DNA of 64,000 bases from Selaginella moellendorffii (lineage: Eukaryota; Plantae; Lycopodiophyta): positions 242,995 to 306,994 of the forward strand of contig NW_003314328.1 in the NCBI RefSeq assembly GCF_000143415.4, written 5' to 3'. Position numbers and translations under genes: made by a program. Every line of letters starts with the position of its first letter. The stretch's first letter is position 1. Positions 49,101 through 60,385 of the stretch are shown piece by piece. The notes beneath the pieces were generated by a model. It ran no database searches, was not told the DNA's origin, and saw nothing but the letters and a program-made list of their open reading frames with translations.

Positions 49101-50400
49101 TCCTCGTCACTCTTTCTCTCTCCTGGCAGTAGCATGCTGCGTGTCGAAGCTTTGGATGGCAATAGATCGAGATGTGGAATCGTCTATCGAGTGGTATGAT
49201 ATTATGCTGTTTCGTCGTGATTTTCACTGCTCTTTAGCGTGCGTGGGCTTGTTGGGCTGGTATTTCATGGGCTCTGTGTCGTGTGGCCGACATGCTCGAC
49301 TTACGAGACATGGGGCTCACGTCCGACCACCAGGTACGTGGTTCTCTCTTCTTTTTTTCCATTTGATTTTTATTTCTCACAATTATCCTTAACTTATACT
49401 ATTTCATTGAAAAGCAGGAGTCTGAAATGAATACTTACAGCAGTTTTACTGGAGAAAAGAAGGAAAAGAGGCGAATTTCCTGGTTTTGGAGAATCTAATT
49501 CGGTTGCAGGTGCATCACTTATGTCGCATGAATAATGCAAGGAGAAATCAGGCGAGCACATGAGGTAGGCTCCCACAATCCCCACTACTTGGCGGTTGAC
49601 TCTTGCTTTTTTAGTGCAGATTTTGGAAGTTGACTGGAGGAGCTGGAAAAAAAAACTGGCAAATAGTTTATGGCACAGGAACGATTCAGGTAGGAGCGAA
49701 TGACTTATCTCTGCCTGGTTTTTTTTGGTTTTGATAGCGTATCCTGCCTTCTCTGGTGGTGGTGTAGCTAGCTTGTTGCTGTTCCCTGTTCCCTCCTTGT
49801 CTGTGTGTCCTGCTTCTTTTGGAATGACCCTAGGAACTTTTGAGTTTCCTTGAGAGTCCCTTTACGGTCATCTCAGCGTTCTAGTGAGTGTTCTTCCAGC
49901 CGTGTGAATGAGTGAGTGTGTAAAAGGTGGCTACGCGTCTCTCTTCCTTTTGTATGCTTCTCTTCTTTTTCAAGCAGTGTCCCGGGTTTGTTTTTCTCTC
50001 TCAGTACTTTCAATCTCTTTGTCCGTCCAGGTTCTCCTGATGCTTGATTGTTTCTTGGTGTTACTTACACTTCCACACAGGAGGAGGAGGACCTCGCTGC
50101 TCATCATTTGGCGCCTTAAATGCGAAACACTCTTCTTCGTCTCCCTCGGAAACGAGGCGATGGATCGCGAAGGTTTGGGGATCCGTGTCGCAATTCCTTT
50201 CCTCCCTACAGTGCCCGCTAACATGATGCTGCAGGAGTACACACACCAAAGCCAAAGGTTCTATGCCAGGAAGGAGTTTTGGGACCCATCCCTGTTAAAA
50301 CACCGCGCATTTTCTCCGCGAGCATTTTATTCACTTGGATCACCGACAGGATTGTTCCAACGATCAGACAAACAAAACCGTTTAAGAGCGGCCAAAGTTG
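45520..50400 (+). ncRNA. Putative spliced non-coding transcript (lncRNA or distal pri-miRNA leader)
   Basis: Promoter-like block (AACGG inverted repeat 45431-45473, telobox 45525-45532) followed by several AG...GTA-bounded exon-like segments; no credible ORF. Confidence 0.3.
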
Positions 50401-50980
50401 TGTGTGTGTGTGATTTTGCTTTCTTACTCTAGACAATGTTGTTATTAAACACTATAGAATAAAAGGTGGTGGTGGCGTCACCCATTTGATCCTTGCGCTT
50501 GCTTGCATCATTGCATTCCTCAAACCCCTCAAAACTTCCAGTCAACTTTGGCAATCGCCACCCAGACCTTCCAAGCCTTGGAATCCATCTTTGTTTTGAG
50601 GAGCATGCCACGATTCCACAGTCCAATTTGGATTTTAATTTGGAAGCCAAAGCAGAAAGCCCCCAAATTCCATGCATGATTGCCACTCCCAAACAGGCGA
50701 ATCATTCAAAACCTTTCAGCCTCATAGAGCGAGGTCCACCACCATTGACGCTGGGCCGCGCTCGATCCTCCCCTACATGCCATGATCTACGGATCAATCC
50801 CGTGGAGGGATCTCGCCTTTGGTCGATCGAGCGATCCCATAGGCTCCATTCAATCGCGCTTATCAGAGGTGGCGAGGTTCTTTTAGGTTTTAGGGCTCTC
50901 TTGGGGGTCCCGCCCCGCCAGCGGCGCCGCTCACCGGTGGCGCCGCCGGCGGCGCCGCTGTACAGAGGCACAAGGGCAGT

Positions 50981-50987
50981 CTATAAG
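50981..50987 (+). promoter_or_regulatory. Candidate TATA box of pri-miR159
   Basis: CTATAAG after a GC-rich block and before a long CT-rich leader that runs to the hairpin. Confidence 0.45.
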
Positions 50988-52146
50988 AAGCACAGCCATC
51001 AACCTCATTTCCAGTCACTCACTCATTCGTTTGTTCGTTGGTTCGCTCGTTTTCGCCCGCCCAGAGCTCCGAGCTCCTCTTTCTCCCTTCTTCTCTCTCC
51101 TCTCGCTCTTTTCGATCCACCACAAACTCACACACAAGTCTCTCCCCATTTGTTTCTTCCCCGTTTTTCTGTTTTTTTTTTGGTTTGGGCCTGAGCGCTC
51201 CAGGCTTTCGCGAGGCACTTTTTTTTTTCTTCTTTGGATCGTTCTTGCGGGGGCTGGTTTTGCTGCTCGAGCGAGATCGATTGGTTTTGGATTTGGATTG
51301 CTTGGCTTTGCTTCGAGTGATCCACGCTTGATATCCTTTCATGGTGGAATGCAAATCACTGAGGTACAGGCGTGGATTACCGGCTCGTGCTTACTGAGAG
51401 AGAAAGGATGGGATTGCTTGCCTGATCATTGCGGTTTGTGGGCTTCTCAAGATTGTGGTTTTTTTTCTTTCTTTTTTTTCCTTTCACTTTCGCTGCTGTT
51501 GATGGTTCTGGTGATGTTGTCTCGAGGGAAGACGCTCGCTCTCGCTGGCTGGCTGTTTTGCTGCCTGCGCTGCTTTCACTCACTCTCTCTTTCAATGGGC
51601 TCGCCTTTGTTTGCTTGCTCCTTTTGCTTTTCTGAATCTATCTGTCTGCATCCACCACTTGGTCCATCCCTCGCTTTGGCATTTTGCTTCCTTTGATGTT
51701 TGCCTCTCCAACTGCAGGGCTGCTCGTTTCACTGATCCCCACTCCAGCTTTCATTCTCTCTTTTCAATCGTCGCATACTTCTCGTCCTCCTTCGCTTTCC
51801 ATGGCGTTGTTGAGAGAAAAGCCAGTGTAGTCGTTTCCAAATCGTCCTTGTGCACCCTCCCTGCAAATTCCCGTCCGTGACAGAATCCCAAAGCTCGATT
51901 CTTTCCGCCCGCAGTCATTTCCTCTTCATTTCGCTCATTTACTGCAATTCTTGGGGTTTGAAAGCACGCGTGCGTCGAGAATTCGATCCGAGCCGCGGAG
52001 GACTTGAGAAGCAACGTCAACAATCGGCGCTGGGAGAGGTCTGTGTTTCTTTCCTGCGATGATCTTCCCTGCGCGAGTGACATACACATACGATAGTTTT
52101 GAGAGGCCTCGAGGTTTTGAGCTATGGTGTGTCGGGCTTTGGCTTG

Positions 52147-52416: not shown

Positions 52417-53509
52417 AGATTCACAGCATCGTTTTGCAACACTTCTTTGCTATTTGTTTCCTTTTCTTGTTTCGTTTTTTTCTTTTCCTTGAGAAAATAA
52501 ACAGTTTTTGGTTCGTTTCAAGCTCGTTTGAATTCCAGCCATGTCAGTTGTGCAGCTTTGGGACACAGATCCAAGTTGAAAAAGAAGGAAAAATAAGTTT
52601 TATTTTGCATTGCTTGTTTCTCATTCTTCCTATTTTGTGGCCTAGACAATGAAGGAAGAATCTGTGCTGGAGGGGAGTCATTCAATTTGAGGGGCGAACT
52701 ATTCGGGCACAGGTACTTAAATGAGATCGATTTTGGAATTCCTCAGAGCTTACAACAATGCAGGATCTCTCCTACCAGATTTCCCCTCCTGCTTGCTTTT
52801 GTTGTTTTGTTGGGGAGGATTTAACCGCCCGCTCAACAGCTTATACATTTGACTTCACAGAGAGGAGCTCCTTTTCTTTCCTGTGATCCTCGATTTAAAC
52901 AGTTTCTAGCAGAGATTGTCGTTTCCTCCATAATCAATTAGTACAAGCAAAGCAAACCCAAGCAAAGCTTGTTTATCATTTCTCAACATTCCAGCAGTCA
53001 TATATATATATATATATTTCAAGCAAGGTAGCTGATAGTGAGAGCGAGGGGGGATGTTCAGAAGTGTTGCAAGTGACTCAGATTGTAAGAGAGTGAGGAT
53101 CAGAAGAGGTTGATAGATAGATGCTGTTTATGGTTACTAAAGTGTCTTTTGGGGCATGGGTTAGAAGATTGGAAATTACATTACTGGAAATAATAATAGG
53201 AAACTCTTGGCTCCAGCAAGCAAATGGTAAAAAAGAATGAGAAAGAGGAGTGTTGCAATGGAAGAGATTGTATAAAAAAAGCAAAAGCCTGGAACACACC
53301 TGTAGAAGTAGAAATGAAGGGTGGAAAAAGAGATGGAGGCAAACTGCCCACAGCCCATACCCCATGTCAGAAGTGCAGGGACATTCTTTTCAGGGCTTGT
53401 CCATTGGAGGAACAAACCCTGGAAAACCATAGCTATTTGAATTTGATATCTTTAAACTTTCAAACTATTAGGGCACACTCTGTTCTAGGTTTAGGGCTCT
53501 TGGACAGGA

Positions 53510-56500
53510 ATGGGCGAGGCGGAGGAGACGCTGCCGGAGCCGCGGCGCTGGGCTCCGCCGCCTATTCCGATCTGCGCAGCGGCGGATCGCAGCAGCTTGC
53601 TGCTGGAGTGGCCGAAATACGTCGATTTCGCTGATGGATTCGAGTACTGCTTGGAGCTGGGGTTGAAGAGGGCGCTGAGGAGCGATCTGCACGGGCGGAG
53701 GCCCGGGAAGAAGAATGCGGGGATGGGAAGAGATCTCGGAGCGCCCGAGCTGATCGAGTTTGCCGTGGCCTGGTCGGAGCATTTCCCGCAGGGGATTTTC
53801 ACCTCATCCGCGGCTGGGTATGCGGTGAATTTCGACTGTCTTGAGTGGAAGACGATCTATCGTGGCTCGGAGAACTCAAGCAAGGTATTCGAGCTTGTTT
53901 TTTTCTTCTTCTTCACGCGGTTGCTGGTGTGATATATGTGCATTTTGTTTTTCTTGGTTGGATTCCACGAAGAACAGGTTGAGGATTTGATACCCGGGAT
54001 GGGATACGTTTTCCGGCTTTGCGTCATGCTTCCGGATTCATGTTCGAACGAAGCACCACCACCTCTTTCCTCGGACCAAATCATGTTTTTTACAATCCCA
54101 TGCGCGCCATGCCCGCCGGAGTGCCCGCTACTCGTGGATCGTGGAAGAACTTCGCTTAAGGTTTGTTTCTTCTCGTTTTTTCCTTTTGTAAGCTGGATGA
54201 TTCTTTTTTTTTTCTCTATAGTTGAAGTGGTCGCCACCCTCGATTACCGGCGGAATGGCGATACGTGAATACATCGCTGAGATGAAGCGTCCAGGCGGCG
54301 ATTTTGAGAACGTCTACAGTGGTGGCACAAATCTCACGGTTAAAGTGACTCGGCTTGTCCCGGGAACCAGCTATATCTTTCGTGTGCAGGTAGACATTTT
54401 CTATTTGTCTACGTTCTCATTTTCTCGTTTTCCTCACTCCAGGCTTTGAGCTGCCTAGGCTGGAGTGGCCTCAGTAAAGAAGTGACATATGTCACAGCTT
54501 CGTCTGTTCCTGCTGCACCCACGCCTCCTAGTCTCTTGAGCTCGTCTCGAAACTCCATATCCCTTTGCTGGGAGGTATTGCCAGATTTCTATTTAGACTT
54601 TTCTGAGCTTCGTTCTGTCACTTCGAAATACAGGAACCAGACAATCATGGCTCACCAGTATCCTCTTATACTCTTGAGGCTGACGATGGTAAACGGCAAC
54701 TTTCATACATATGTATATGATATTTTATGATGCAGGACTCGACGGGCCGTTTTCCGTTGTTTACAGTGGCGAGGAACGAAGGTTTGACATTTTTTCAGGA
54801 TGATTTGCCATTTATTAATACTTTTATCTCTTAGTTGTGAAGTTGGTAACCTGAGGAGTGGAACCAGCTATAAGTTCAGAGTTCTTGCTCACAATGGCAT
54901 TGGGAAAGGTGCATTTAGCGCGTCTGCGAGGTTTTCAACATCGCACTCACCTCCATCTGCGCCTCGGTCACTTAGCATTCTTGGCAAGACATCAACCTCT
55001 GGAGTCATCGGCTGGAGCCCACCTGATTACAACGGTGGAAGCTCTATAACCGGGTTTGTCATACACAGTACTTTACTAATAAAACAAATCTCATGCGGTT
55101 TCATTCAGGTATGAACTGGAGTTCAAGCTGAAGGCGTCTGGCAGCTGCTGGACTCAAGCATATAGCGGTCAATCGAGCACGTGCAACCTCATTGGTCTTC
55201 GTCCTGGTACGCATAAGATGGCATTTGTAATCGACAAGCTGAGTCGTTCGTGCAGGATGTCAATATCATGTGCAGGTAAGAGCAAAGAATAACGAGGGAT
55301 GTGGAGATTTTTCTCAAGAAGGTATTCAGATTCTCTTATGAAGTAATAACGCCGTTCTTAGTTCGTTTGTGTATGCAGCTTCTTTTATGACTTCTCCTGG
55401 CCTGTCAGAAGCTCCCTCGTCTCCGGTGTTTTCAGAAATACGAAGTACATCGCTGAAAGTTTCCTGGGACCGTCCCAACCACGACGGTGGCTCAGCTATT
55501 CTCGGATATCGTTTAGAGGTAATGTTACACTTCTATCAACAGATTTTAATTTTTCGTCTTAGATGCTAATTGCAGAAACAAGCGACTCTTTGTGTGTATA
55601 TCGAGGGGATGAGCTTTCTGTTGGCGTAGACAAGCTTATTCCCGGGCAGAAATACATTTTTAAAGTACAGGCTTTGAACAAAGCTGGTTCTAGCGGTTGG
55701 AGCGGTATGGTAGTTGTCTGCAGCTGGCTTTGACTGATTTTTTGTTGTGTAGGCCCGAGTGAAGTTTGGACAAAAGCAGCTGTTCCGGATGCCCCTGAAA
55801 CTCCAACTATTGTCAATGTATCATCTACCACCGTTTCTCTACGGTAACTGAGATTCTCGCTTTAAACGAGTTCTATGACACACAAGTGACGTTGCAGGTG
55901 GATCTCGCCAAAGCCAAACGGTAGTTGCATACTATCTTACCGTCTTCAAATGGCCAATCTAGGATATGATGCAACAAACCGGCAGAATGAGATGTTTCGT
56001 TTTTATTCATCTGGAACTGATCGTTACATTGCTGGGGAGGAAAATGTGAGGTACAGATAATCTCGTAAGGTTGTTTTCGCTTATATAAGTTTAGACGCAG
56101 GAAACACAGACTGAAGATAATGACCAGGAACGTCACGCTGTTCAATCTGTGTACGATGGTCCTGCTCTTGCGTATACATTGAAGAACCTTCAGCCATGGA
56201 CTTCATATGCTTTCTGCTTGCAGGTTGTGTGCCTTCTCGATTCTTTACATTCATATCTCGTGGCTTGCCAGGCCTTGAATTCGGTTGGAGAAAGCGTTTG
56301 CAGCAAGATCATCCTCTCTAAGACATCTCCGTCTTGTCCTTCGCCACCGTCTCTTGTCATTAGTGAAACATCAACCGATACTGTGTCGCTACAATGGGAG
56401 GTATCAAATTGTTGCTATTGAAAATTTATCGGGCTCATTAGTTTAACGATTTTTGCAGCTTCCACAGCGAGACAATGGTGCTAGCGTGATTTCTTTTGGC

Positions 56501-57772
56501 CTTCACATGAAAAAAAAACCCGAAGCCTTCAAGAACAATCCAAGACATAACAAAACGCATATAGAGGACACTACGGACGAGTGGACTGAAGTATACAAAG
56601 GGGCATTGCTCAAGTAAGCAATTATTTTATGTTTTACTTCATCTAAAAAGCTTGCTGCAGTTACGCGTTACCGTCGCTACTGCCTGGGCATTCATACATG
56701 TTCCGGCTCGTAGCCTACAATGTGTATGGCCCTTCTGGACCAAGCTTTGTGACTGCCTCCACACTTGCAGCGTGTCCTCTTCCTCCATCCCCGCCAACAT
56801 TTTCTGGAATATCACCAACAAGTGTCCGTGTCAGGTGGGCTGCCCCTACTTGCGACAATGGAGCACCGATCTTGAGGTTGGTGTTGTTGATCTTTCAAAG
56901 ACCTTACTTTTTATTCGACCTTTCTGCAGATACAGGCTTCTCATGGATCATTCTAAGTCTGGTCATATGCATAAGGTTTGAATCGTCTTTTTTTTCTCTC
57001 TTAACTGTCTACATGTATTGATTGCAAATCTATCTTTTCAAGGTGTACGAGGGGGATTCGACGTCTTACAAAGTTGTAAAGCTCGTACCTGGGAGATCTT
57101 ATCAGGTGGCTGTCCAGGTAAAAAGACCCAAACAGATATTCTCGGTTTTTGCTCAACAGCTTTGTCTAGGCTATCAACTCTGCCGGTGCGAGCCATCTGA
57201 GCGACTTGTCTTCGGTTACTCTCCCAGCTCAGATCGTTCTTCCCGCACTGGACGCACCACAGCTGGCTCGTTCCAATGATTTCCTTTCCGTATCGTGGAC
57301 GCATCTGGATCAGCGAGAGGTCGTCTCTTACACACTCCAGATGGAGTCAGCGCCTGGCAAGTTACTCCAAGTTTACGAGGGCTCCACTCCAAGGTACGTC
57401 CATTAATGTTCTCGGGACAAGGAAGTAGACTGCACACTTAATTGTTTCTTTTTTGATTTTTTCTACTGTAGGTTCATGCTTGATATCAACAACAGTAATA
57501 AGAGCTGCAAGTTTCGAGTGCGCGCCAACGGGGGTGGTCTGGAAGTTTGCTCCGGCCCCTGGAGCCCATTCTCGACATGGACTCCTCCACCCGTGTCCAA
57601 ACAGAAACCAAAGGATGTGAAGCGATCCAGCTCGATCACGACAATGGATTTCATACGAGGTATGCATCAAAGACTCGCAGATCCATGGAGTGTCAAGCAG
57701 CGAAGGATGATTGCGCTAATCGGGACTTTGCTTACACTAACTCTGGCCTTGTTCACGAACACTCGCGATTGA
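53510..57772 (+). CDS. Multi-FN3 (about nine fibronectin type III repeats) protein with C-terminal transmembrane anchor; many exons
   Basis: Repeated P-x-x-P...W-x-x-P-x-x-x-GG...Y-x-L...L-x-PG-x-x-Y-x-F-R-V-x-A-x-N-x-x-G units; C-terminus RRMIALIGTLLTLTLALFTNTRD*; junction near 55980-56100 not resolved. Confidence 0.85.
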
Positions 57773-59233
57773 TTCTCAGGTACGTGGCCTTGGACAAGTC
57801 AAACAGGGGAGGAAAAATCTAACCTTTCAAAGCCACTGTCTCGCAGGAGTTTCGGTCAAGTTTGGTTGGCCTCGCCTCACATGGTGTGTTTCTAAGATCA
57901 AGAAGATCACGCGTACGTAACTCCATGCATGCGTACGGAGGCCGCCAAGCAAGCCTTTGCGAATTGATTGCGGTGACGCGGAATCGCCGACCAGAGACCT
58001 GCCACGTAGCACTCGCTCGCTCGCCCATTCCGCGGCGGAAAACGTCACCGCCCAGCCAACCACCACGCTCTCGACTTTCCACATCGGAATGTGGCCCCGG
58101 TGCGCATTCAATGAAGCCTCACATCTATCTATCCCGGAAGTACAGTTGGGTGGTGGTTCCCGGTTCAAATCCGATATATTCCCAAGCCATACCCGCCACA
58201 TCAGCGTGACACGTGCCAACGTCAGCAAAGCGCGTTCTTCTAAAAGACGAGACCCCTTCCTCTTTTTTTTTTTCAAGTTTTACCACAAGGAAGGTTCTGT
58301 TTTGAGTCTTTGGATTCGTTTCCTCCAAGAAAAAAAAGAGAGAAGATACGAATGGAAGATCACGTAGGTTGTGATCAATCAAGGTCTTAAGACATTAACA
58401 ATTACCATTTTTTACTTTTTTCCTGTTTAGACCGAGAAGAGCGAAGCTTCTGTGTGTAGATTTTGACCAGCCGCTGCTTTTCCAAGTGAATCGCTATCGC
58501 ATTGATTGCACGAGTGAGGAAAAAATTACCACCGCCTTGAACAAGTGAAAACCAGCCCCATCAAAAGATCAAAATCAATCAAGGTAACCCAAGTTGGTGC
58601 AACCAAAAACAAAATGCCGGCTATTAGGGCAAATTCACCCAAGACACGTGGAGCAATATGGACTGTGCATGCAGACGTAGTTACTGCCAGATGCCAGTCA
58701 TATATTCCGCATATTCCACTGTGCCCGGTCGCTTTTATTTTTTTACTTTTTTCCGACAGCAGCAGCGCGACCGGATCGTTTTCCACCTACCAGATTCCGC
58801 CGGTTGCGGCGTACGGACACGAGGGGAGCTAGCGTACGGTAGCCGCCGTCAACGGTGTGGATCTACGGTTCCATTCACACGGTCTCAAATCCAGCTAAAA
58901 AATCTTCCTTGGGCCGAAAAATACTTGCCTCTTCCTATTACACAATCTCTTCTAGACCATCGCCCACCGATCCCCAGGTGAGCGCTACAGGTTCTCGAGC
59001 GGTCAGAGAATCGCAAATTCCAGGTCTGTCTATCCAAATGCGATAGCGCGCGATGATCTCACGAGCGAATCCCCGAGGATAAAGATATATAATTCGATTC
59101 GAGGCCGAGAGAGCTTGATGCGAGCGGAGAGGAAGATCCTTGAGAGGGGACGAGAGAATTCACGCCTGTGAATGATTCCAGGAGCTCGGATTCCTCCTGT
59201 GCTGCTTCGTCTCTCCATCTCCAATCGCTGTCA

Positions 59234-60385
59234 ATGGCAACCTGGGAGCCAAAGTTGCCTTCTTCCTTCCACGAGACGTCTCTCTGGTCGCTCAAATCCA
59301 GTGCCGCTAGCGCTACCACCGCCGCTGATCACAACCACCACCACTTCTCTTGGTCTCCTCTAGGTTCCAGCGATTCGCCTACCACCGCCACGATGGCCGA
59401 CAAATCGCTTCTTAGCGCTCTCAACAAAGCTTCGCCTCCATCGCGTCAATTCGCCACCAGCGGTGACAAGCTCGATCAGCCCACAGATTTTCAGCACGAC
59501 GGGGACGCTGGAGCTCACGGCTATGGCAGTGCCACCACGAATTCCTCCACGGCGCCAAACCGGGGCAGCGCCACCATCGCCAACAAGCTCCTCGGTGGGG
59601 CGGGAGCTCTAGGAACAGGATCCGGGAAGGTAACAAAGAAGCGAGCTCGCGCGTCGCGGAAGCCTCCCACCACCGTCCTCGAGGCGGACAGCTCCAACTT
59701 CCGGGCGATGGTGCAGCAGCTCACTGGGATCCCGTCGGTTCCGTTCCTCTCCTCGTCGATGCACCAGCGAAACGGCCTCGAGTTCCTGGATCTCGGCAGG
59801 CCCCCGACGGCCACACGCTCGATCCTGGGCTTCGCAGGTCCACACCACCAGGCGTTGCAGGGACTTCCACCGCTCGACCCCTCGGCTTTGCTCCCAGCTT
59901 TCGGCTCGAGAGCTCACTCCGAGGCCACGGCCGCTGGGTTTGGATCATCGTCGCCATACTTCAAGTACATGTCCGCCGCGGTGGCCGCCAGCGCTGCTCC
60001 TCACGAGCACTCGAGGCAGCAGCAAGCTCCTCCCAGTATGGGGGACTTTCTGAGAACACCGCTGGACGAGCTCGGCCTGGACCAGAATGCGAGCTCGCCA
60101 CTGCTGAGCTCGCTGGATCAGCAGCAGCAACACGAGCAGCAGCGTGTAAATCTTCCCAGGAAATTGGAGAGCTCGGAGCTCTCGTCCATGCCTTCGATGT
60201 GGGAAGGAGGTGGCGATAGCTCGAGTCGAGAGTTGCAGGCGACGAATTGCAAGACCGAGGATGGTGGTCCGGAGCATGGAACTGATGATACCGGCGACCA
60301 GGAGGGATCCAACAGTAGGATGGTTCACATTGTGGATTCGTGGTTGTCCCATGCAGATCAAACCACGGATCACAAGCAGCACTGA
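59234..60385 (+). CDS. VQ-motif protein, intronless
   Basis: KKRARASRKPPTTVLEADSSNFRAMVQQLTG (FxxhVQxhTG); TATA at ~59086; first in-frame ATG at 59234. Confidence 0.93.
   Translation: MATWEPKLPSSFHETSLWSLKSSAASATTAADHNHHHFSWSPLGSSDSPTTATMADKSLLSALNKASPPSRQFATSGDKLDQPTDFQHDGDAGAHGYGSATTNSSTAPNRGSATIANKLLGGAGALGTGSGKVTKKRARASRKPPTTVLEADSSNFRAMVQQLTGIPSVPFLSSSMHQRNGLEFLDLGRPPTATRSILGFAGPHHQALQGLPPLDPSALLPAFGSRAHSEATAAGFGSSSPYFKYMSAAVAASAAPHEHSRQQQAPPSMGDFLRTPLDELGLDQNASSPLLSSLDQQQQHEQQRVNLPRKLESSELSSMPSMWEGGGDSSSRELQATNCKTEDGGPEHGTDDTGDQEGSNSRMVHIVDSWLSHADQTTDHKQH

Follow-up and report, generated by a model that had tools for sequence, protein, structure and literature searches.

Does a land plant possess a counterpart of FNDC3, a family that has been discussed as one of animal proteins, in connection with the adhesion of spermatids, the differentiation of adipocytes and bone, the formation of synapses and the migration of cancer cells, and whose mechanism is poorly defined? 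The question is raised by a locus of the lycophyte Selaginella moellendorffii that lies in the window analysed here, a stretch of 64,000 nucleotides. In our assessment, the gene is intact and under purifying selection, and it probably represents in plants the FNDC3 family, which includes vertebrate FNDC3A and FNDC3B and Drosophila Miles-to-go (Mtgo). The preliminary description of the locus had proposed an FNDC3-like architecture, and this stood as regards nine fibronectin type III (FN3) domains, an anchor at the C-terminus and the lack of any signal-like segment, but not as a novelty: the NCBI RefSeq record of the protein, XP_024515058.1, already bears the name "fibronectin type-III domain-containing protein 3a". 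The detection was thus preceded by the NCBI pipeline name, FNDC3a, and the novelty lies in the evidence and in the evolutionary context. A collinear plant counterpart would mean that the design of nine domains plus an anchor either predates animals or moved beyond them.

Gene model and domain composition

The coding region consists of 21 exons and 1045 codons, from ATG to stop, and the exons, with the stop codon, sum to 3138 nt. Each of the 20 introns has a GT donor and an AG acceptor, and their lengths range over 44-93 nt. The exons were translated singly and each was matched to XP_024515058.1 (1045 aa; hereafter P0001), which was reproduced with every translation at its expected place; P0001 was the query in the subsequent searches. 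An earlier GenBank model, EFJ13478, departs from the present one in places. Two RefSeq isoforms can be read from the splice sites: X2 lacks aa 622-623, i.e., the first two codons of exon 14, which fits an acceptor 6 nt downstream, while X3 lacks aa 868-871, the final four codons of exon 19, which fits a GT at 57106.

53510..57772, + strand, whole FNDC3-like coding region (exon translations against P0001 = XP_024515058.1)
53510..53884, + strand, exon 1, aa 1-125, donor GT
53978..54160, + strand, exon 2, aa 126-186, intron position common to Ceratodon
54222..54389, + strand, exon 3, aa 187-242
54443..54574, + strand, exon 4, aa 243-286
54634..54688, + strand, exon 5, matches P0001
54736..54781, + strand, exon 6, matches P0001
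54835..55053, + strand, exon 7, matches P0001; region used as query in the PDB search
55109..55206, + strand, exon 8, matches P0001
55256..55321, + strand, exon 9, matches P0001
55379..55518, + strand, exon 10, matches P0001
55563..55704, + strand, exon 11, matches P0001
55753..55843, + strand, exon 12, matches P0001
55898..56045, + strand, exon 13, in frame; 3' part encodes the start of the domain 6 loop; followed by intron 56046-56094
56095..56223, + strand, exon 14, matches P0001
56272..56400, + strand, exon 15; the preceding intron (phase 0, aa 665) has the sole position common to animal genes
56459..56613, + strand, exon 16, matches P0001
56661..56876, + strand, exon 17, matches P0001
56930..56975, + strand, exon 18, a 46-nt micro-exon
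57043..57117, + strand, exon 19, matches P0001
57170..57393, + strand, exon 20, matches P0001
57472..57772, + strand, exon 21, encodes the end of domain 9, linker, membrane helix and stop
53549..54091, + strand, FN3 domain 1 (D1), aa 14-163, intron-spanning and divergent, carrying an insert of some 60 residues; first half pLDDT <50; aligns to animal domain 1
54092..54499, + strand, FN3 domain 2 (D2), aa 164-261, by own profile and AlphaFold2
54500..54946, + strand, FN3 domain 3 (D3), aa 262-357, top match of human FNDC3A domain 3 (1x5x)
54947..55395, + strand, FN3 domain 4 (D4), aa 358-453, top match of human FNDC3A domain 4 (2crm)
55396..55775, + strand, FN3 domain 5 (D5), aa 454-549, top match of human FNDC3A domain 5 (2crz)
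55776..56325, + strand, FN3 domain 6 (D6), aa 550-682, with a disordered low-confidence loop at aa 598-632
56326..56766, + strand, FN3 domain 7 (D7), aa 683-794, with a loop at aa 730-746
56767..57220, + strand, FN3 domain 8 (D8), aa 795-888, by own profile and AlphaFold2
57221..57580, + strand, FN3 domain 9 (D9), aa 889-982, missing in two moss relatives
57692..57760, + strand, C-terminal membrane helix, aa 1020-1042 of 1045 by AlphaFold2 and hydropathy, with three residues after it

About nine tandem FN3 repeats had been proposed from the reading of the sequence, and nine units were recovered both by a profile of the protein's own D2-D9, with which D1 scored weakly (13.6 bits) and D2-D9 scored 88-119 bits, and by AlphaFold2, D1 being divergent and the remaining eight canonical. 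The three motifs that had been quoted as examples of the repeats were located at aa 380-397, 477-494 and 818-832. The Pfam fn3 check that had been suggested gave 324 bits for the whole protein, with seven stretches passing, and exon-sized open reading frame pieces of the locus carry fn3 matches as well. In the AlphaFold2 model, D2-D9 showed beta-sandwich strand patterns with block pLDDT values of mostly 80-93, while residues 1-83 had pLDDT <50 and D1 was of low confidence. The Pfam family Pur_ac_phosph_N cross-matched the FN3 units. The FN3-type fold of the Selaginella protein is also found in the VIN3/VEL family and in the N-terminal domain of purple acid phosphatases; these have one FN3-like domain each (in a PHD-FN3-VEL arrangement or joined to the phosphatase), without a tandem array or a tail anchor.

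Likeness to animal FNDC3, plant relatives and origin

Outside plants, P0001 and the plant profile matched FNDC3a, FNDC3A and Miles-to-go best, with 319-562 bits. Like the Selaginella protein, vertebrate FNDC3A and FNDC3B have nine tandem FN3 domains in collinear order and a single hydrophobic helix at their very C-terminal end; the lengths are similar (1045 aa compared to approximately 1100-1320 aa) and the identity is about 27-29%. The same layout was found in Mtgo, the fly FNDC3 orthologue, which was among these top matches (383-389 bits) but differs in its size of 1700-1840 aa and its long low-complexity N-terminal extensions; Mtgo has been linked to the chaperonin subunit CCT3. The FNDC3-like protein of the choanoflagellate Salpingoeca kvevrii (EukProt EP00050_P021962) also has nine FN3 domains and a C-terminal helix; the tree places it outside Metazoa, as it does the plants, and gives it a very long branch (1.78). 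Among all of the FNDC3 proteins examined, from choanoflagellate to shark and including flies, nine FN3 domains and one extreme C-terminal hydrophobic segment were present in all but one, the exception being a Rhopilema protein without the C-terminal segment. A protein of the cryptophyte Hanusia phi (P0131) was considered as a further case of this architecture and rejected, as its FN3 domains number six and a terminal helix is lacking.

One difference lies in front of the array. Vertebrate FNDC3A/B carry an N-terminal proline-rich region with a PPGY/PPxY motif (PMC12907209), which is absent in plants; in Selaginella, only 13 residues precede D1. The cnidarian, mollusc, annelid and choanoflagellate FNDC3 proteins that were checked have a proline-rich N-terminus (11-16%) but no PPxY, and hence the motif defines the vertebrate proteins and not the whole family. 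On sequence grounds, the proline-rich region is a holozoan feature, found also in S. kvevrii and unlike the plant proteins. Because the plants lack this WW/SH3-binding N-terminus, any partners recruited through it would not be conserved. The plant counterpart thereby separates a conserved core, the FN3 rod and its anchor, from the animal-specific proline-rich N-terminus. The juxtamembrane motif differs as well, being PWS..RR in plants and [ST]D.Q.A in animals.

Plant relatives were found only in the moss Ceratodon purpureus (KAG0600368.1) and in one moss-like transcript (P0009/P0120), which was found as intron-free 4.8-kb contigs and is therefore taken to be transcribed. Both share 40-44% identity with the Selaginella protein, are collinear with it from D1 to D8 and have the same C-terminal helix and PWS..RR motif. 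They differ in having eight FN3 domains, without D9, in a much longer D6 loop and in an acidic, glycine-rich N-terminal extension of 125-160 residues (0.6-0.8% proline). It had been proposed that the architecture was kept in seed-free plants; the moss and lycophyte members are consistent with this, but the nine-domain form does not extend to either moss relative. No seed-plant, fern, algal or fungal relative was among the matches from 5.8 billion proteins, EukProt included, and no angiosperm orthologue with this layout, which had been named beforehand as a refuting result, was retrieved; since word-index searches score just 8000 candidates, this absence is suggestive only. The gene appears, as far as the sequences searched indicate, to be missing from seed plants. 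A scan of metagenome contigs with the plant alignment gave 337 pattern matches, none of which was confirmed, and a literature search found no paper on a plant FNDC3.

The preliminary description had called for a phylogeny with the animal proteins. In the resulting tree, the plants formed one clade (support 100) outside a monophyletic Metazoa, which followed the species tree; the tree is unrooted and contains three clades only. Selaginella and Ceratodon have 17 intron positions in common, in the same phase, and therefore the gene was present before the mosses and lycophytes split. The FNDC3 genes of the annelid Capitella and the cnidarian Hydractinia also have 17 positions in common, while only 1 of 20 is common to Selaginella and these animals, so that as an independent test of plant-animal common descent the introns are uninformative or negative. 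Together with the patchy range (holozoans and two land-plant lineages), this makes an old gene transfer possible beside the "ancient" descent that had been proposed.

In such a transfer, an early land plant from which both mosses and lycophytes descend would have received the gene from a holozoan or another FNDC3-bearing eukaryote, with plant introns gained afterwards. The occurrence so far in a choanoflagellate, animals, a moss and a lycophyte fits this history, as do the lack of any alga, fungus, fern or seed plant among the matches and the sharing of introns with animals at about chance level next to the 17 positions kept within each kingdom. However, the plants are not nested in Metazoa, and any donor would have to be pre-metazoan or unsampled; divergent members in other lineages could escape word-index searches; massive intron turnover could have occurred over more than 1 billion years; and an unrooted tree of three clades fits either history. 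We consider the transfer possible but somewhat unlikely. The apparent absence from seed plants and the almost complete lack of shared introns thus turn vertical descent versus ancient transfer into a question that can be answered with existing genomes. A wider scenario combines several steps: FNDC3 would predate animals, as an older eukaryotic tail-anchored FN3 scaffold or through a very old inter-kingdom transfer, would have been kept only in land plants with swimming sperm (mosses and lycophytes), in a spermatid role parallel to that of mouse Fndc3a, and would have been lost with motile sperm in seed plants. Taken as a whole, this scenario is improbable.

The C-terminal helix and the predicted membrane

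Hydrophobic segments were defined by a 19-residue Kyte-Doolittle window (KD19) of at least 1.6, and the sole such window in P0001 spans aa 1025-1043; none is N-terminal. Hydropathy and AlphaFold2 agreed in this respect, and the initial observation was borne out: no signal peptide is obvious, and one helix lies right at the C-terminal end. The plant-conserved PWS..RR motif (aa 1017-1024) precedes the helix. The protein thus has the features of tail-anchored proteins, i.e., no signal-like segment, a single transmembrane domain no farther than about 30 residues from the C-terminus and its bulk on the N-terminal side. Lacking a signal peptide and carrying its anchor at the end, it would be inserted post-translationally, and the whole FN3 array would face the cytosol. 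FNDC3B has been described as an ER-anchored protein with nine FNIII domains and a C-terminal transmembrane segment (PMC12907209), and by analogy the membrane would most likely be that of the ER or another endomembrane, where the array may serve as a long protein-binding rod or scaffold. From the terminal helix and the lack of a signal-like segment, we infer a function as a cytosolic FN3 rod that is tail-anchored to an endomembrane. Transformable mosses would offer a simple system for studying the role of such a rod.

The helix of Selaginella is only moderately hydrophobic (KD19 of 1.72, compared to 2.16-2.45 in the mosses and 2.5-3.3 in animals), and an ER destination is for this reason not assured. 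In plant tail-anchored proteins, moderate hydrophobicity and basic flanks of the kind seen here, KQRR upstream and a short TNTRD tail, can favour organelle outer membranes. The tail anchor could accordingly sit in a plastid or mitochondrial outer membrane, or in some other membrane than the ER, which we regard as unlikely: the moss helices are more hydrophobic and lack the basic tail, and descriptions of the animal relatives place them in the ER or ER/Golgi (PMC12907209, PMC12828876).

Domain collinearity and integrity of the gene

FN3 domains are easily duplicated, and an array of nine with an anchor might have been assembled independently in plants, its likeness to FNDC3 being due to convergence. 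The eight domains of the mosses and the missing proline-rich N-terminus would be in line with this, as would the exon-level PDB search, in which titin, receptor phosphatases and contactins led and no FNDC3 was in the top 60. That search, with the single exon at 54836-55054, was discarded as a basis for a family call because a query of one and a half generic FN3 units is too short to point to a family. An exhaustive HMMER search with the last exon (1.84 billion representatives) returned only its own cluster and six unrelated weak matches, and thus D9 and the tail have no recognisable relative at that level; the ESM Atlas gave generic FN3 clusters only.

FNDC3 and Mtgo ranked above sidekick, PTPRQ, titin fragments and bacterial arrays richer in FN3 domains. 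Within a set of 156 retrieved proteins, animal FNDC3 queries ranked the plant proteins right after animal FNDC3; a database search with a jellyfish FNDC3 did not list the plants, although within that set this query gave them 310-357 bits. Collinearity of the single repeats with those of FNDC3 had been set beforehand as a test of the relationship, and two approaches agreed on it. The hhalign comparison of the plant and animal alignments gave a single collinear match of 779 columns (E 1.4e-81), running from D1 on animal domain 1 onward. The plant domains were also scored against nine animal per-domain HMMs. The uncentred scores were noisy, with a diagonal peak in only some rows; after removal of row and column means, the diagonal averaged +12 bits compared to -0.5 to -3.7 at shifts of 1-2 (z 3.8; 0 of 50,000 permutations as high). 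This signal was kept by D2-D8 alone (5 of 5040 permutations reached it) and was absent in the four control arrays (PTPRQ, sidekick, bacterial and JGI; z -0.4 to 0.7). Matrices of raw domain-to-domain scores, each with one animal protein (z 1.7-2.8), were too noisy, and the per-domain profiles with centring were used instead. Moreover, three of the four single-domain structures of human FNDC3A (d3, d4 and d5) matched the domain of the same number. In view of the diagonal signal, the ranking above larger arrays and the identical domain number and terminal anchor, convergence is already disfavoured and very unlikely.

A pseudogene, contamination or an error of annotation is, as an explanation of the locus, likewise already disfavoured and hardly credible: the low-confidence modelling of residues 1-83 and of three loops and the local differences of the older GenBank model might suggest it, but the reading frame is open through all 21 exons, the intron lengths given above and the neighbouring gene argue against a contaminant or artefact, and the gene structure is kept in a chromosome-level moss assembly. 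The frameshift that had been suspected at 55980-56100 does not exist; this stretch consists of the end of exon 13, the intron and the beginning of exon 14, and encodes the D6 loop. Between the two haplotype copies, there were 0 indel columns in 3138 exon nt and 16 in 1113 intron nt, and dN/dS was 0.47 (p 0.026). In both haplotypes, the downstream neighbour is the same plant-specific VQ-motif gene.

Structure and intactness of the gene

The plus strand at 53510-57772 held no long ORF, and a series of short open pieces was found there, seven of which matched Pfam fn3. Splice sites were set by reading frame, GT/AG and FN3 continuity, giving a model of 21 exons (3138 nt in sum, stop included) with introns of 44-93 nt. 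The exons were translated singly, by reference. The last exon alone, used as query in an exhaustive HMMER search, retrieved a protein of 1045 aa, XP_024515058.1, in which all of the exon translations were located at their predicted positions. The likeness to FNDC3 is prior RefSeq knowledge in the form of an automatic name, "fibronectin type-III domain-containing protein 3a". The frameshift that was suspected near 55980-56100 proved to be absent, as exon 13 ends and exon 14 begins within this stretch, with an intron of 49 nt between them.

The same gene is present on the second haplotype, and comparing the two copies revealed differences at 1.1% of exon sites, with no indel column across the 3138 nt, and at 2.5% of intron sites, where 16 indel columns occur along 1113 nt. 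Replacement changes were below the neutral expectation (dN/dS = 0.47, p 0.026). A gene of the VQ-motif family, which is a plant gene family, lies downstream in both haplotypes; in the other haplotype, a VQ gene of 383 aa is called in the same place. The FNDC3-like gene is neither a pseudogene nor a contaminant. The neighbouring features were as follows:

49908-51696, plus strand: three ORFs upstream of the gene, 174-233 codons, no Pfam match
59168-60385, plus strand: VQ-motif ORF, 405 codons without a stop (Pfam PF05678, E 7e-12), approximately 1.4 kb downstream

A profile derived from the repeats of the protein itself identified nine FN3 domains (D1-D9), of which D1 was weak and D2-D9 strong, and the whole-protein Pfam fn3 score was 324 bits. 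AlphaFold2, which was run on an alignment of 24 sequences, modelled D2-D9 as seven-strand patterns with a pLDDT of mostly 80-93, low-confidence loops within D6 (aa 598-632) and D7 (aa 730-746), and a linker leading into a helix (aa 1020-1042); the first half of D1 (residues 1-83) had a pLDDT below 50. By hydropathy over the protein, there was no signal-like segment, and the sole strongly hydrophobic window, aa 1025-1043, forms a single anchor at the extreme C-terminus. Because the domain profile, fold and hydropathy agree, the preliminary description of an FN3 array with no signal peptide and one C-terminal helix is confirmed, and its FNDC3 interpretation is largely supported by the comparisons with animal proteins.

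Relationship to animal FNDC3

Outside plants, the top matches were an insect FNDC3a, scoring 562 bits against the plant profile, together with a jellyfish protein, Drosophila FNDC3A and Miles-to-go; all of these outranked sidekick, PTPRQ, titin fragments and bacterial arrays having more FN3 units. The jellyfish protein in turn retrieved FNDC3 from cnidarians, a mollusc, an annelid, arthropods, lamprey, shark, fish and the choanoflagellate Salpingoeca kvevrii. Every FNDC3 member examined had nine FN3 hits and carried a single hydrophobic segment at its very C-terminal end, except for a Rhopilema protein that lacked this segment. With animal FNDC3 queries, the plant proteins ranked directly behind the animal FNDC3s within a local set of 156 proteins.

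Profile-profile alignment of plants and animals gave a single collinear match (779 columns, E 1.4e-81) that placed D1 on the first animal domain. Since any pair of FN3 arrays aligns in some register, each plant domain was scored against nine per-domain HMMs that were built from 20 holozoan FNDC3 proteins, with plant sequences excluded. After the row and column means were removed, the Selaginella D1-D9 diagonal averaged +12 bits, compared with -0.5 to -3.7 for shifts of 1 or 2 (z 3.8; none of 50,000 permutations as high). The Ceratodon diagonal reached z 3.2, while control arrays (PTPRQ, sidekick, one bacterial and one JGI) gave z -0.4 to 0.7. For D2-D8 alone, which leaves out the odd terminal domains, the identity order was among the best 5 of 5040 in Selaginella and the best 4 of 5040 in Ceratodon. 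Of the single-domain structures of human FNDC3A, numbered via shark FNDC3A, domains 3, 4 and 5 best matched D3, D4 and D5, respectively, and domain 2 matched D3. The repeat-by-repeat collinearity expected of an FNDC3 protein is present, modest in size but real.

Several features differ. The proline-rich N-terminus with PPGY of FNDC3A/B (PMC12907209) is missing in the plant proteins; non-bilaterian members likewise lack PPxY, yet are proline-rich. The juxtamembrane motifs are also unlike, and the animal helices are more hydrophobic than that of Selaginella.

Since it lacks a signal peptide and its anchor is terminal, the protein would be inserted after translation, which would leave all nine FN3 domains on the cytosolic side in one elongated row that may act as a scaffold for binding other proteins. 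Judging from FNDC3B, this membrane is probably that of the ER or of a related endomembrane compartment; the moderate hydrophobicity of the helix also makes the outer membrane of an organelle possible. A putative link to motile sperm is offered as an idea.

Plant relatives and evolutionary history

The gene belongs, as a plant member, to a known family; an annotation pipeline has labelled it accordingly, and it is unstudied in the literature found, as full-text searches returned no paper on a plant FNDC3. Its significance lies mainly in the question of how it evolved. Word-index searches of 5.8 billion proteins, queried with the Selaginella protein and then the plant alignment, revealed only two plant relatives among the candidates scored: KAG0600368.1 of the moss Ceratodon purpureus (44% identity) and a moss-like protein from two 4.8-kb contigs, which are intron-free and therefore transcripts. 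No fern, seed-plant or algal relatives were among the 8000 candidates with the most words in common that each search scored, which makes absence from these groups suggestive. Selaginella and Ceratodon have 17 intron positions in common, identical in phase, and hence the gene predates the moss-lycophyte split. In both lineages, a PWS..RR motif lies directly ahead of the terminal helix. The mosses have D1-D8 and an acidic N-terminal extension but lack D9, and the Ceratodon gene, in the segment 2287560-2297799 of CM026444.1, has longer introns (114-475 nt) and a much longer D6 than Selaginella (216 versus 133 aa).

In a maximum-likelihood tree of 22 full-length proteins, the three plant proteins formed one clade (support 100) outside Metazoa, which were monophyletic and branched internally in agreement with the species tree. 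This tree samples just three clades (plants, choanoflagellate and animals) and so fits vertical descent and an old transfer alike. Mapping of exons showed that Capitella and Hydractinia have 17 intron positions in common with each other and one with the plant genes, approximately the chance level. Because of this result and the patchy taxonomic range, an ancient transfer, with introns gained afterwards, stays a live, if less likely, alternative. A recent animal-to-plant transfer is rejected because the plants fall outside Metazoa, as is contamination, which is also contradicted by the plant VQ-motif neighbour in both haplotypes.

Further features of the Selaginella gene were also observed. Between strands three and four, D1 carries an insert of approximately 60 residues (window 53660-53840, aa 51-110), which was modelled as disordered and which the moss proteins lack; it is encoded within exon 1, where the sequence is GC-rich (57% over 53500-53999). 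RefSeq isoform X2 differs from X1 by two residues where exon 14 starts (56095-56100) and X3 by four at the end of exon 19 (57106-57117); these differences are exactly what alternative splice sites at distances of 6 and 12 nt would produce, and a GT, the candidate alternative donor of exon 19, is seen at 57106. Phase-0 introns recur at equivalent spots in different FN3 units, namely after the ...FRVQ, ...CLQ or ...AVQ strand in D2, D6 and D8 (exon ends 54389, 56223 and 57117) and after W-E of the second strand in D3 and D7 (54574 and 56400), which suggests either that introns were gained repeatedly at similar sequence or that they were inherited through domain duplication.
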